From: Selaginella moellendorffii
Lineage: Eukaryota; Plantae; Lycopodiophyta
Reading direction: 5' to 3'
NCBI RefSeq assembly: GCF_000143415.4
Contig: NW_003314276.1
Location: forward strand, 1,013,434 to 1,077,433
DNA length: 64,000 nt
Below the pieces are notes generated by a model. It was not told the origin of the DNA, did not search any database, and saw only the letters and a list, made by a program, of their open reading frames with translations. Positions 13,673-20,463 of the stretch are shown here, piece after piece. The position numbers and the translations under genes were made by a program. Every line of letters begins with the position of its first letter. Within the stretch, counting starts at the first letter, position 1.

Positions 13673-14611
13673 ATGAAGCAACAGGGAATTATAATTCTAT
13701 TTTTTTGGGGTATATGTTTTCTTTCCCCATCTCACTCCACCATATATCAGTATTTCCACTTTCGTGAGGGTTTGGGTGTGCTTGATTTGGATCAAGCAAG
13801 AGAAATTGGATATCACCTTTCATTGATTATGATAACTGGAATACCTCCATATACATCTACAAGCACAACACAGGAAGGGTCTACCTTTTCTGCAGAAATC
13901 CGAGTTAATAGGCAATTGTTAAATCTTGCATTCTACTTTTTTAGTGCACGCGACCTCACTCTACAATGCTATATAGCATTGGCACCTCCAACTACAAGGG
14001 TTTCTAACAATTTAATCCACTTAACACTTGGAGATACCATGGACCGAATTGCTGATGAAATTCTTAATTTTCGTCCTGCCCTTGGCTTTGTGGTAATTGT
14101 TACTGATATTGGGGTGTTTGGAGTCTCTTACCTGATCCGCAATTATGTAAGACCAAACATTGGCACTAATGAAATTCCAAGCAGGATCAATCTTCAATCT
14201 TGCAACCCTTTCTCGGCCATGCTTATTAGTGGTACGAGGATTAACCCCTTTTCAAGACTTGGTCCTGGGGATCAAATTCATTTAGGAGGGCATACACAAA
14301 TTGGAGTAATTGTATTGTTCATGGATTATACTTGCAACTTGATCATCTACATATATACTACTAGCAAGTCACTTTGGACCTCTGAAACTCATGGATTTGG
14401 GTTCGATTGCTATGTGCTCATGCAAGAAGATGGAAACCTGGTAATCTATGGATCACATGGAACATCATTTTGGTCAAGCTTTTCTTTTTGTGTGCCTTCT
14501 CCTGCATGCATTGCTCCATCATTTGTTGCTCTTGGACCCAAATGCAGGGTTGGTGTGTATAGATATGGTGCTCCGGCAGTTGAAGTCTGGTCACCAGGTG
14601 ATTTTTGCTAA
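13673..14611 (+). CDS. Secreted chimeric protein: signal peptide + ~155-aa unknown domain + C-terminal bulb-type (GNA) lectin domain, copy 1 (312 aa, intronless)
   Basis: Hydrophobic N-terminus MKQQGIIILFFWGICFLSPSHS. Lectin subdomains LFMDYTCNLIIY..LWTSET, DCYVLMQEDGNLVIYG..FWSS (QxDxNxVxY) and a degenerate LGPKCRVGVY..VWS. Confidence 0.85.
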   Translation: MKQQGIIILFFWGICFLSPSHSTIYQYFHFREGLGVLDLDQAREIGYHLSLIMITGIPPYTSTSTTQEGSTFSAEIRVNRQLLNLAFYFFSARDLTLQCYIALAPPTTRVSNNLIHLTLGDTMDRIADEILNFRPALGFVVIVTDIGVFGVSYLIRNYVRPNIGTNEIPSRINLQSCNPFSAMLISGTRINPFSRLGPGDQIHLGGHTQIGVIVLFMDYTCNLIIYIYTTSKSLWTSETHGFGFDCYVLMQEDGNLVIYGSHGTSFWSSFSFCVPSPACIAPSFVALGPKCRVGVYRYGAPAVEVWSPGDFC

Positions 14612-14879
14612 ATTCACATAAAAAGTGCTTTGAATAAATTTTAAAGAATAAAATGTGAACTAAACCATTGGAAGTGCTTGATGTCTTGCAATTTTGCTAG
14701 TTTGGTAGAATTTTCCTCTTCCATGCATGCGTTGTGGATCGCCATTCTCGCGAGCGTCACCACTGGGCTTCGACGCATTCCTTGGCCGATGAATACTGTT
14801 TGAAGGGACACTACTTCTTTCACAGGGAGGAAGACTCGGCTTGCAAGGGAAAGAGGCTTCTGGATCCTTTTCGGTGCAG

Positions 14880-15827
14880 CAATCTGTGGATTTCATCTCT
14901 TTCGAGGCAGGGAGAAGAAGGGTCGAGCGCGCCATGCTTGCATCCAGCGCGGGTTTGGCCTATTTCCTTAGAAACTTATTTCGATTCGAGGTAAGCTTCT
15001 CTCTTCTCAATTCTTACTCCACAGTCTTACTTTGGATGCTTCTTTCTGCTTCCTATTGTCATCTTCGGGGCGTGGCCACTGGTCGCAAAACAATGAATGT
15101 TTTCATCTTTGCTGTATTCGAAAAACATTTGTTCTCTAGGCGATCACAGCCTTGCTTCTTCACGTCATTGCTGGACTCTTTCTTACGTCGTACACAGATT
15201 TGGATATCTCACAGAACTTTTGGAATTCTTCGTCTAGTTGATGCACGGATTTCTCGGCGTTGCCATGGGTGCTTTGTGGAGTCGCTCGCTCGCTTGCTAG
15301 ATTTCCATTTTCTAACACGTTGCTGCTCAGATGGAGAATCAACTGGGGCGTCTCGATCCTTGCTTGTACACTGGTATGCACGAAACTCTTTGCTTTTGGC
15401 TCGATGTTCTCACTGTCTGGAGTTGCAGGTCCGTGCTGTTGGAGCGATTGGCTTTGTCTTTCTGTGCTCTTGGCTGGTCAAGGAAAACACCCTCAACTTG
15501 GTACAAAGAAATTCATTTGGCTGACCTTGACCAAATGTTCCTCTTCTCTTGCAGATCACCATAAACACCCATGCTTCGCTCTCGTACATGGTGGCCGCAA
15601 TGGGGATCAATATCTCGCTTACCTCGCTTACAATGCCGACCATCTATGCTGTGTTCACGTCCTTGGTAAAGTTTCTCCCAGTTTTAGATCGAAAGCTGAC
15701 CTCTAGCTTATCGTGAACTGCGCATCGCTTTGTTTTCCTCCTCCATGTTTTGTACGCGATTATTCTTCAGGGCCTGGGAATCAAGTCGTCACTGGCGGTT
15801 CCTGGCTGGATGTCGAGATCCATGTAA
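14880..15827 (+). pseudogene. Degenerate DUF2232-family membrane protein gene (At1g26180-like), copy 1
   Basis: Spliced fragments VERAMLASSAGLAYFLRN, GVATGRKTM, LMHGFLGVAMG, WRINWGVSILACTL/VRAVGAIGFVFLCSWLVKENTLNL/ITINTHASLSYMVAAMGIN and GLGIKSSLAVPGWMSRSM*, with deletions and lost splice sites. Confidence 0.7.
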
Positions 15828-15979
15828 AATCAAAGGATGCTTACCCGGAATTCATCCTTTTGTACAGACACCATTTCTGGCGTTGATATAAAAATCGGGG
15901 ATGGTGAAAATTCCAGCTTTAAGTTAGAGCACGTTCTCTCTGTTTATCAAGAAAGATGCCCAAGCCTCGCTCGAAGGAG

Positions 15980-16057
15980 TTACAGGCTGAACCCAGTGAC
16001 CAGGAGTTCGGCTGGGGCGGACAATGGCGCTACCAGTGCCCTGTCCGCAGCCTCCAT
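15980..16057 (-). other. Junction-created 25-codon chimeric ORF (Toc N-terminus fused out of frame to the last U11/U12-59K exon)
   Basis: Translates MEAADRALVAPLSAPAELLVTGFSL*. The first 16 codons match the Toc gene start, and the Toc upstream region is duplicated at 16058-16232. Confidence 0.7.
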
Positions 16058-18544: not shown

Positions 18545-19112
18545 TTGGAAAGAATCTAAAATTTCGGGCACTTGGTCATGGCGTCAGTCCAGAAACTTGC
18601 CTGATCATCTTCCAAAAACCTTTTGATCCGTGAAACTCTTGCAAAGCCGCCAGAAACGCGTCTTCTTCTCCTCTCGAGGAGAGTTCTAACTTCCGAGGGT
18701 GAAGTGTCGTGTGTCGGCACCCGGACAACGTAAGAGTTCGCACATAGAAACTCTAGAACGAATGAATCAAGCTAGTGAAAATCCCTAAAAATCATGGACG
18801 AACCTGTAAGCCATTTGGAGCTTCAACGATCCATTATCTGTTCCCACGAACCGGCACAGGACCTGTGAGAGTTCTCCAAACTCGCTGTAAACCTGCGCCA
18901 GTCCATGGAAAAACGATCCTAGATGGATTAGAATGACGAGGAAACTCAGAGCAAAGTTGTTCTCTATCGGGACAACAGTGGAGATCACTATATCTTCAAC
19001 TAACTATTCTCATTTATCTGTTTTTTCCTGTGACTATGAGCAATCCTTTTTTTTTTTCTTTTTTTTCTGTTTTCCTTATGTTGCTTGATCAATCTTTTAT
19101 TTGCTTTTGCAG

Positions 19113-19308
19113 GTGGTAGACGTGAACATTGGATTCGAGGACATTTTCAACACGGGTAAAAGTTTGCTCTCCCGCTGAAAACTTATGCGGGCTTTGGCAC
19201 ACCAAGTACTGGCATTCAATGGCACAAATGTCGAGAACTTGAAGCATTTGGCAAATATGGTGGAGAGCTGCAAAGAGGAGTTTGTAAAATTTGATGTCAA
19301 CCACCATA
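19113..19308 (+). pseudogene. Deg protease PDZ exon fragment, copy 2
   Basis: VVDVNIGFEDIFNT..QVLAFNGTNVENLKHLANMVESCKEEFVKFDVNH. Confidence 0.8.
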
Positions 19309-19530
19309 TGGATTCCCGGTTCTGATTTATATTTTATACGTTAAGTAATACGTTATTTAGCACGTTAAGTAATACAACAAAATAAAATATTAAATTAGTA
19401 AGGATTTAAAAATTGCAAGCAACACAACTAATGAGATACACTTGTCCAGACACTAAGAATTCTTTTGGATTTTGCTGATGGAAACTCGTTTTAATTTGTG
19501 AGTTAGGTAAATGAATCTCCTTAAAGGTAA

Positions 19531-20463
19531 ATGAAGCAACAAGGAATTATAATTATATTTTTTTGGGGTATATGTTTTCTTTCCCCATGTCACTCCATCA
19601 TATATCAGTATTTCCACTTTCGTGTGGGTTTGGCTGTGCTTGGGGTGAATCAAGCACGACAAATTGGACACCGCCTATCAGAAATTATGATAATTTCAAT
19701 GCCTCCATATAGGAGCACAACAATGGAAGGATCTACCTTTTCTGCAGAAGACCTTGTTGATGGGGTACTGTTTGATCTTGCATTCTACTTTTTTAGTGCA
19801 CGTGACATCACTCTACAATGCTATATAGCATTGGCACCTCCAACTACAGAGGTTTCTAACCACATAATCCACTTAACACTTGGAGATACCATGGACCGAA
19901 TTGCTGATGAAATTCTTTTGTTTCGTCCTGCCCTTGGCTTTGTGGTAATTGTTACTGATATTGGGGTGTTTGGAGTCTCCTACATGATCCACAATTATGG
20001 AAGACCAAAGGCTGGCACTAATGAAATTCCAAGCAAGATTAATCTTGAATCTTGCAACCCTTTCTCAGCCATGCTTATTAGTGGTACGAGGATTAACCCC
20101 TTTTCAAGGCTTGGTCCTGGGGATCAAATTCATTTAGGAGGGGATTCACAAATTGGAGTAATTGTATTGTTCATGGATTACAGTTGCAACTTCATCATCT
20201 ACATATATACTACTAGCAAGTCACTTTGGACCTCTGAAACTCATGGATTGGGGTTCGATTGCTGGGTGCTCATGCAAGAAGATGGAAACCTGGTAGTTTA
20301 TGGATCACTTGGAACATCATTTTGGTCAAGCTTTTCTTTTTGTGTGCCTTCTCCTGCATGCATTGCTCCATCATTTGTTGCTCTTGGACCCAAATGCAGG
20401 GTTGGTGTGTATAGATATGGTGCTCCGGCAGTTGAAGTCTGGTCACCAGGTGATTTTTGCTAA
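19531..20463 (+). CDS. Secreted unknown-domain + bulb-type lectin protein, copy 2 (310 aa)
   Basis: Paralogue of 13673-14611 with an intact ORF and MQEDGNLVVYG motif. Confidence 0.85.
   Translation: MKQQGIIIIFFWGICFLSPCHSIIYQYFHFRVGLAVLGVNQARQIGHRLSEIMIISMPPYRSTTMEGSTFSAEDLVDGVLFDLAFYFFSARDITLQCYIALAPPTTEVSNHIIHLTLGDTMDRIADEILLFRPALGFVVIVTDIGVFGVSYMIHNYGRPKAGTNEIPSKINLESCNPFSAMLISGTRINPFSRLGPGDQIHLGGDSQIGVIVLFMDYSCNFIIYIYTTSKSLWTSETHGLGFDCWVLMQEDGNLVVYGSLGTSFWSSFSFCVPSPACIAPSFVALGPKCRVGVYRYGAPAVEVWSPGDFC

Follow-up and report, generated by a model that had tools for sequence, protein, structure and literature searches.

Two tandem open reading frames (ORFs) in a 64,000-nucleotide stretch of the Selaginella moellendorffii genome (contig NW_003314276.1, positions 1,013,434 to 1,077,433; hereafter the window, in whose coordinates positions are given) are real, intronless genes of a family that joins an orphan N-terminal domain to a C-terminal GNA-type lectin domain. 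The two copies are a mosaic shaped by gene conversion, and about a fifth of the codons in the orphan domain have probably changed adaptively across the family. We favor this combined reading with modest confidence. The features on which it rests are collected in Table 1.

A preliminary description of this DNA, made from the letters of the sequence, had reported both ORFs as intact and intronless, as indeed they are (312 and 310 aa, single exon, plus strand). In BLASTP, the two translations share 266 of 312 identities across a single 2-aa gap. A codon-by-codon list gives 44 replacement codons, with 36 at or before codon 177 and 8 beyond it, as well as 11 purely silent codons. The multi-base changes TTG>GAA (codon 51) and AAT>TTG (codon 132) are real, and codons 263-312 contain no difference at all. 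Identity between the copies drops to 88% over the first 400 nt of the ORF. These figures match the counts given in the preliminary description (about 44 residue differences plus a 2-aa indel, about 36 of them N-terminal, about ten silent codons, and identity over the last 50 or so codons). It was also right that the adjoining duplicated DNA is nearly identical: the ~800 bp at 11079-11873 and 17214-18013 differ by only 3 mismatches, and flanking DNA is 96-100% identical between the duplicated units in 200-bp windows.

From the same pattern, a strong excess of amino-acid change had been claimed, and this claim did not survive the calculation of pairwise rates. Comparing copy 1 with copy 2 by the Nei-Gojobori method, we obtained a nonsynonymous rate (dN) of 0.080, a synonymous rate (dS) of 0.087, and a dN/dS ratio (ω) of 0.92 over the whole ORF. 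For codons 23-177 the corresponding values are 0.135, 0.127, and 1.06, and for codons 178-312 they are 0.029, 0.045, and 0.66. Since nonsynonymous sites make up ~77% of all coding sites, neutrality predicts a ratio of 44 replacement to 11 silent codons. Silent sites of the N-domain have themselves diverged about seven times as much as the flanking DNA: 12 of 107 of them differ, compared with 32 of 1800 bases in the flanks (Fisher p = 2e-6). What we found is therefore a dN/dS at or below about 1 with silent sites equally diverged (dS 0.127 against ~0.018 in the flanks), the outcome that the preliminary description had itself named as refuting its claim. A pairwise dN/dS significantly above 1 between the copies is not supported.

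Additional family members were reached through annotated fragments and through the neighboring TOC120 gene, giving seven sequences in total: the two window copies (c1A and c2A) and five more. These comprise the counterparts of both copies on the other haplotype (c1B and c2B), a paralogue, p3, found on two syntenic scaffolds, and a paralogue, p4. So far, the family is known from three genomic sites, which have at least four paralogous gene positions between them. In one DNA run of the species, 113 contigs fall on this stretch with identities from <90% to >99%, so further paralogues probably exist.

These genes have largely escaped annotation. Neither lectin ORF is present as such in the protein collection we searched. 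The sole public annotation here, the 'partial' gene model EFJ28023.1, wrongly splices copy 2 onto the middle of copy 1 over a ~5.7-kb spacer, and its other-haplotype counterpart, EFJ29455.1, contains the identical false fusion. Both p3 and p4 are annotated only as fragments of 73-91 aa. In a literature search, the five SELMODRAFT locus names appeared in no paper.

Several observations speak to whether these ORFs are genes. All seven are intact at 310-322 aa, beginning and ending at conserved residues, whereas neutral evolution along the inferred tree should have produced ~19 stop codons, of which there are none (P ~4e-9). Every indel within the ORFs is a multiple of three, and the flanks show indels of many lengths. 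The eight cysteines of the mature protein are invariant across the seven members. In codon models, for which we used our own implementation (its M0 likelihoods match IQ-TREE to three decimals), the lectin domain has an M0 ω of 0.31 with ω = 1 rejected (twice the log-likelihood difference, 2ΔlnL, of 29), and pairwise ω in the lectin half is 0.22-0.32 between loci. Because all seven frames are intact, their indels keep the frame, the lectin half is under purifying selection, and the cysteines do not vary, we take both ORFs, on this sequence evidence, to be real and selectively maintained genes. An account in which they are chance-open frames or decaying pseudogenes in duplicated junk DNA could draw on their annotation as mere fragments, the gene fragments around them, an N-domain ω near 1, and their AT-rich composition (GC 0.40, and 0.32 at third codon positions, GC3; the TOC120 ORF alongside has a GC of 0.61). 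It must also accommodate the seven intact frames against ~19 expected stops, the exclusively in-frame indels, the constrained lectin domain, the eight fixed cysteines, and the ~30-43% of N-domain codons with ω ≤ 0.06, and we consider it very improbable.

The C-terminal half of the protein places the family among known lectins. In a phmmer search against 1.84 billion representative proteins, 3115 matched at E ≤ 1e-3 and 562 at E ≤ 1e-10; the best 150 of the 3115 all fall on residues ~185-280, and those we checked among them carry PF01453, with the exception of P0009, a 73-aa fragment under which paralogue p3 itself is annotated. A profile of the family matches garlic lectin, gastrodianin, and GNA in the PDB at E ~1e-13 (best 8e-14). 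Residues C221 and C246, invariant in the family, align to the cysteine pair of garlic lectin and gastrodianin. The domain is divergent, with a third subdomain that does not align to Pfam or PDB lectins. By these alignments, we class it as a true, divergent member of the GNA/B_lectin group, with a predicted beta-prism II fold.

The roles of the residues in the QxDxNxVxY mannose-binding motif have been described (PMC6359319). As the preliminary description had recognized, this motif is present, with one intact instance per copy. Of the three mannose-binding sites, only site II is intact, and its Q, D, N, V, and Y are invariant in all seven members. Site I is degenerate, with D in place of Q and T in place of D, and retains N, Y, and the conserved cysteine. 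Site III is lost, the third subdomain being replaced by a cysteine-rich tail. From the motif, the lectin domain is predicted to bind mannose-containing glycans.

The N-terminus of the protein resembles a signal peptide: residues 1-22 consist of a basic start (MKQQ), a 13-residue hydrophobic core, and S-H-S, with small residues at -3 and -1, and this arrangement is kept in all members. The proteins are probably secreted, to judge from this feature and from the eight invariant cysteines of the mature part. Between it and the lectin lies a domain of ~155 residues in which conserved blocks alternate with hypervariable positions. The order proposed at the outset, of signal peptide, unknown domain, and C-terminal lectin, thus stands, with a start that is signal-peptide-like by sequence and a C-terminus that is GNA-type.

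We found no relatives of the N-domain by the sequence methods used. Pfam contains none at E ≤ 10 (only chance-level matches to CagZ and TA0956), a profile search found none among PDB sequences, and neither a word search limited to residues 23-182 nor the Atlas features yielded any. In the phmmer search with the whole protein, the best 150 of the 3115 matches all arose through the lectin part, and none of these was to the N-domain alone, although weaker matches confined to the N-domain could rank below them. An internal duplication within the N-domain was rejected, as hhalign of its two halves gave a probability of 0.1%. AlphaFold2 models were unusable, with a mean predicted local distance difference test score (pLDDT) of 30 for the whole protein (from the 7-sequence alignment) and 39 for the N-domain alone. 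Both of these low-confidence models repeat a helix plus hairpin, helix plus hairpin arrangement, which is a hint at most given those scores.

Family-wide codon models give a more differentiated picture of N-domain evolution than the pairwise comparison does. The average M0 ω of the N-domain is 0.84, indistinguishable from 1 (2ΔlnL 1.2). When site classes are allowed, model M2a is strongly preferred to M1a in the N-domain (2ΔlnL 41.8, p ~1e-9), compared with a 2ΔlnL of 0.04 in the lectin domain. Under M2a, 30% of N-domain codons have an ω of 0.01, 48% an ω of 1, and 21% an ω of 6.2, and across models the fast class holds ~20% of codons at an ω of 4-6. The signal recurs in each half of the N-domain analyzed on its own tree (2ΔlnL 21.7 and 19.1, p = 1.9e-5 and 7.1e-5) and in subsets of 4 and 5 taxa, one of which lacks tandem partners (2ΔlnL 19.4-33.6, p from 6.2e-5 to 5.1e-8). 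At 16 sites the posterior probability is ≥0.9, and 13 of the 34 replacements between c1A and c2A in gap-free N-domain columns fall on them. Under more conservative nulls the support shrinks, to a 2ΔlnL of 13.9 (p = 0.001) when double and triple nucleotide changes are allowed, 7.3 (p = 0.026) with three rate classes that scale dS and dN equally, and 6.1 (p = 0.047) with multi-hit changes and rate classes together.

The same genes and the same mosaic could instead carry an N-domain whose fast positions are just surface or loop residues that are free of constraint and change neutrally, perhaps with a higher local rate and multi-nucleotide mutations. That average N-domain ω cannot be told from 1 is in keeping with this alternative, and when a neutral model is given three rate classes and allowed multi-hit changes, its log-likelihood is less than 3 units short of that of the selection model. 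AT-rich genes (GC3 ~0.32) and apparently weak expression would likewise fit weak constraint. However, plain M2a fits better than M1a with three rate classes (M1a+R3) with two fewer parameters (-1719.8 vs -1723.3), and once the class with ω > 1 is included, no rate heterogeneity remains. The recurrence of the signal in independent halves and subsets also argues against purely neutral change.

A semi-independent check points in both directions. We defined variable codons from p3 and p4 only and then scored them between tandem copies, which gave pN/pS values of 1.8, 2.2, and 3.1 (binomial p = 0.19, 0.22, and 0.013); two of these three cross-validated pairwise tests are thus non-significant, as a neutral account would have it. 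Silent change is alike at variable and conserved codons (pS 0.117 vs 0.108), which does not favor a mutational hot-spot. Hypermutation of the N-domain was rejected as well, its transition/transversion parameter being ordinary (kappa ~2.1). We judge neutral evolution of the fast positions to be a serious rival, though on balance the less likely reading, and diversifying selection on about a fifth of N-domain codons across the family to be likely from these codon patterns. The diversifying selection first proposed for the pair therefore stands only as a weaker proposal at the level of the family (an ω of 4-6 for ~20% of the codons in the N-domain) and not in its pairwise form, with p values of 0.03-0.05 under the conservative nulls.

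Comparison of the two haplotypes reveals a history of exchange between the copies. Up to nt 670 of the ORF, c1B follows c1A at almost all informative sites. At nt 726-785, it carries c2A states at six consecutive informative sites together with the 6-nt deletion of c2A. At nt 740-774, c1A and c2B have derived states in common that set them apart from c2A, from c1B, and from all outgroups. The last 150 nt of c1A equal those of c2A, and c1B departs from this shared sequence at three sites. The level of divergence along the unit varies between 0% and 12%. These mosaic states, the shared deletion, and the uneven divergence indicate repeated exchange between paralogues; the copies show clear inter-copy gene conversion. 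Since such exchange tracts are seen, we attribute the identical 3′ end and near-identical flanks to gene conversion rather than to constraint.

Within the N-domain, c1A, c1B, and c2B group together, and c2A is the outlier. The two alleles of copy 2 (c2A and c2B) differ there by 56 replacement and 11 silent changes (ω 1.6), and in the upstream flank the haplotypes differ by ~8% at copy 2 as against ~0.5% at copy 1. One explanation for this outlier is that the divergent 5′ half of c2A is a recent conversion patch imported from a third, unsampled paralogue. Such an import would raise silent and replacement sites equally, as observed, and would fit both the clustering of the other three sequences and the additional paralogues to which the 113 same-species contigs point. 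On the other hand, no donor is found among the sampled paralogues. As donors, p3 and p4 were rejected, c2A being no nearer to them than c1A is (dS 0.43-0.47 to c2A against 0.40-0.43 to c1A). Derived states are also split evenly between the copies, with c2A matching the outgroups at 21 sites and c1A at 16. We therefore regard an imported patch as a doubtful, if conceivable, source of the divergence.

Evidence for expression comes from three sequencing runs. Each contains one short contig, of depth 4-8, that lies within the ORF and is an exact match to copy 1, and exact copy-1 contigs from these probable RNA runs lie at 14027-14213 and 14265-14492. The directly adjacent non-coding DNA has no exact coverage in the three runs, and nothing of copy-2 type occurs in them. 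Positions 14885-15200 are covered at a depth of ~160, such that this nearby stretch or a near-identical copy of it is well expressed. Together, these data give weak evidence of low-level transcription of copy 1.

The most far-reaching proposal for this locus was that of a new defence system, in which an arms race or a role in self/non-self recognition drives the pair apart through strong diversifying selection. The architecture does suit a recognition or effector protein, the family-level site tests place ~20% of N-domain codons at an ω of 4-6, and the excess of replacements between the alleles of copy 2 described above lies in the same direction. Against this, the tandem pair itself has an ω of ~1 with equally diverged silent sites, and only faint RNA traces are seen. 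There is also no partner gene or multi-gene organization in the duplicated unit, whose other contents are gene fragments and a stretch similar to p3-locus DNA holding a DUF2232 gene model. The term 'system' is thus not warranted for what is one gene family, and we find the defence proposal in its original form improbable. A milder version, in which these secreted proteins act in recognition or as effectors and form a family specific to lycophytes, with a hypervariable domain of new fold under diversifying and possibly balancing selection and tethered to glycans by a single-site GNA lectin, we put forward only tentatively, as a possibility on the unlikely side.

Several considerations weigh against our favored reading of a conversion mosaic with an adaptively changing N-domain. 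Single sequences fall under the Pfam B_lectin gathering score (13.6 bits, E 0.096, for copy 1 against a threshold of 32.4, and no match for copy 2). The RNA signal amounts to three short, low-depth contigs from runs whose RNA status was guessed. Our codon models were validated only through their M0 match to IQ-TREE, and the sample comprises seven sequences from four gene positions. When the null allows for fast neutral sites, positive selection is only borderline, at p = 0.03-0.05. Finally, site-model tests are inflated by recombination, which is demonstrable between the copies.

If the favored reading holds, the locus may be understood as follows. Flanks and 3′ end would have been homogenized recently, by gene conversion or unequal exchange between the tandem units, and the 5′ half would have kept an older divergence at silent and replacement sites alike. 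Across the family, the N-domain would evolve fast, with strong conservation of about a third of its codons and probably adaptive change at about a fifth. The lectin domain could anchor the protein to mannose-containing glycans, while the variable surface of the N-domain may contact a changing partner.

Table 1. Coordinates of the tandem lectin genes, their parts, the duplicated units, and related copies. Plain ranges are window positions; ranges with a prefix refer to the other loci compared.
Feature	Position	Strand	Basis or remark
Copy 1 (c1A), single-exon coding sequence, 312 aa + stop	13673..14611	+	ORF list; start and stop kept in 7/7 family members
Copy 2 (c2A), single-exon coding sequence, 310 aa + stop	19531..20463	+	ORF list, BLASTP, translation
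Signal-peptide-like N-terminus, residues 1-22 (copy 1)	13673..13738	+	Read from sequence
Orphan N-domain, residues 23-176 (~155 residues; copy 1)	13739..14200	+	Conserved blocks alternate with hypervariable positions
GNA-type (B_lectin) domain and Cys-rich tail, residues 177-312 (copy 1)	14201..14608	+	phmmer, PDB profile matches
Degenerate site I, MDYTCNLIIY, copy 1	14321..14350	+	HMMER alignment to 1kj1 and 1xd5
Intact site II, QEDGNLVIY, copy 1	14423..14449	+	Translation; aligned to PDB lectin motif
Intact site II, QEDGNLVVY, copy 2	20275..20301	+	Translation
Public gene model EFJ28023.1 (SELMODRAFT_15875), 123 aa, 'partial'	14219..20331	+	
Tandem duplication unit 1, containing copy 1	9681..16014		Self-BLAST, sliding-window identity
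Tandem duplication unit 2, like content, containing copy 2	16009..21874		Self-BLAST, sliding-window identity
Other-haplotype copies 1 and 2 (c1B, c2B)	L006:2461-3390 and 9121-10050		Scaffold GL377577.1
Paralogue p3	L002:2383-3342 and L003:7377-8342		Two syntenic scaffolds
Paralogue p4	L005:7437-8396		

The duplicated unit is ~6 kb long and contains, by Pfam and gene models, the 5′ end and promoter of TOC120, an RNase E/G-like fragment gene on the minus strand, a DegP-like fragment, and the lectin ORF. It also holds a stretch resembling p3-locus DNA that includes the DUF2232 gene model. A 220-bp piece of the unit (13227-13447) resembles the 3′ end of a DegP-like protease gene upstream of p3 (in the 77-79% identity class), and 1.3 kb (14692-16014) is 77% identical to DNA downstream of p3, where the DUF2232 gene model lies. 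Because stretches of the unit are thus 77-79% identical to DNA beside p3, the locus is a segmental copy of the p3 region that was then tandemly duplicated.

The adjoining 742-aa ORF (7501-9729, minus strand) matches S. moellendorffii TOC120 exactly. Its first ~50 nt and upstream region were duplicated along with the unit (9681-9921 vs 16009-16235), and one annotated TOC120 model appears to extend into the second unit (gene range L004:1-4839). The RNase E/G-like gene, a short annotated gene of 210-232 aa with a faint Pfam match, is duplicated on the minus strand at 10182-12403 and 16319-18544 with 97.6% identity. Within this duplication, a 400-bp stretch shows no difference (11275-11674 vs 17414-17813) and is probably a very recent conversion tract. 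Two minus-strand ORFs in the same region (10219-10626 and 16358-16792) have a sub-threshold likeness to the Pfam family DUF1424, 'putative rep protein' (E 0.0015-0.003), that is probably due to chance.

The haplotypes are structurally different at the locus, the lectin genes being 6660 bp apart on the other haplotype and 5858 bp apart here. In the second unit of the other haplotype, a ~1-kb segment is inverted (L001 reverse complement 19194-20193 vs window 10182-11171). Elsewhere in the window, very AT-rich stretches (GC 0.26-0.36) occupy 1-4000 and 26001-28000, and the rest has a GC of 0.43-0.60.

These findings bring to light, in an early-diverging vascular plant, a class of lectin-fusion genes that had been hidden, together with a 155-residue domain that has no match by the sequence methods used. 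Surveys of plant lectins start from annotated proteins above InterPro or Pfam thresholds (PMC6362431). Such surveys would miss this family, in part because it is annotated only as 73-123-aa fragments and because a single sequence falls below the Pfam cut-off. If the adaptive signal is true, the family offers a tractable, lineage-specific recognition module, and if it also proves to be a family of recognition or effector proteins, it would constitute an immune-type module outside the known plant receptor families. If the signal is not true, the locus is a clean illustration of how a 'hypervariable domain plus conserved domain' pattern can be imitated by gene conversion between tandem copies.

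Tandem clusters of plant recognition genes, encoding nucleotide-binding leucine-rich repeat (NLR) and receptor-like proteins, are shaped by gene conversion and diversifying selection. The lectin pair is like them in evolutionary mode, with tandem copies, mosaic exchange, and variability concentrated in one domain. It has no sequence or domain relation to them, however, and the evidence for selection is much weaker for the pair.

By sequence, the closest comparison is with the GNA-related lectins of monocots, such as GNA itself (1MSA, 1JPC), garlic lectin (1KJ1), and the antifungal protein gastrodianin (1XD5). The C-terminal ~120 residues described here align with these over the first two subdomains, and both groups have the canonical cysteine pair and a complete QxDxNxVxY motif. 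The monocot proteins, however, are stand-alone domains of ~110 residues that usually have three active sites, whereas here a single site follows an unrelated domain of 155 residues. G-type lectin receptor kinases and S-locus glycoproteins likewise carry a B_lectin module within a larger protein. The receptor kinases carry the lectin at the N-terminus, ahead of S-locus glycoprotein, PAN, and kinase domains. The 312-aa protein described here carries it at the C-terminus, and a Pfam scan found none of those three domains in it. The lectin-like bacteriocins of bacteria (putidacin L1 and pyocin L1), which are among the PDB matches, also use B_lectin as a module. They consist of tandem lectin domains, unlike the family described here, in which the partner of the lectin is a domain with no detectable relatives. 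Judged by its predicted domain composition, the layout of an orphan domain followed by a single-site lectin is a new chimerolectin, so far from this spikemoss only.

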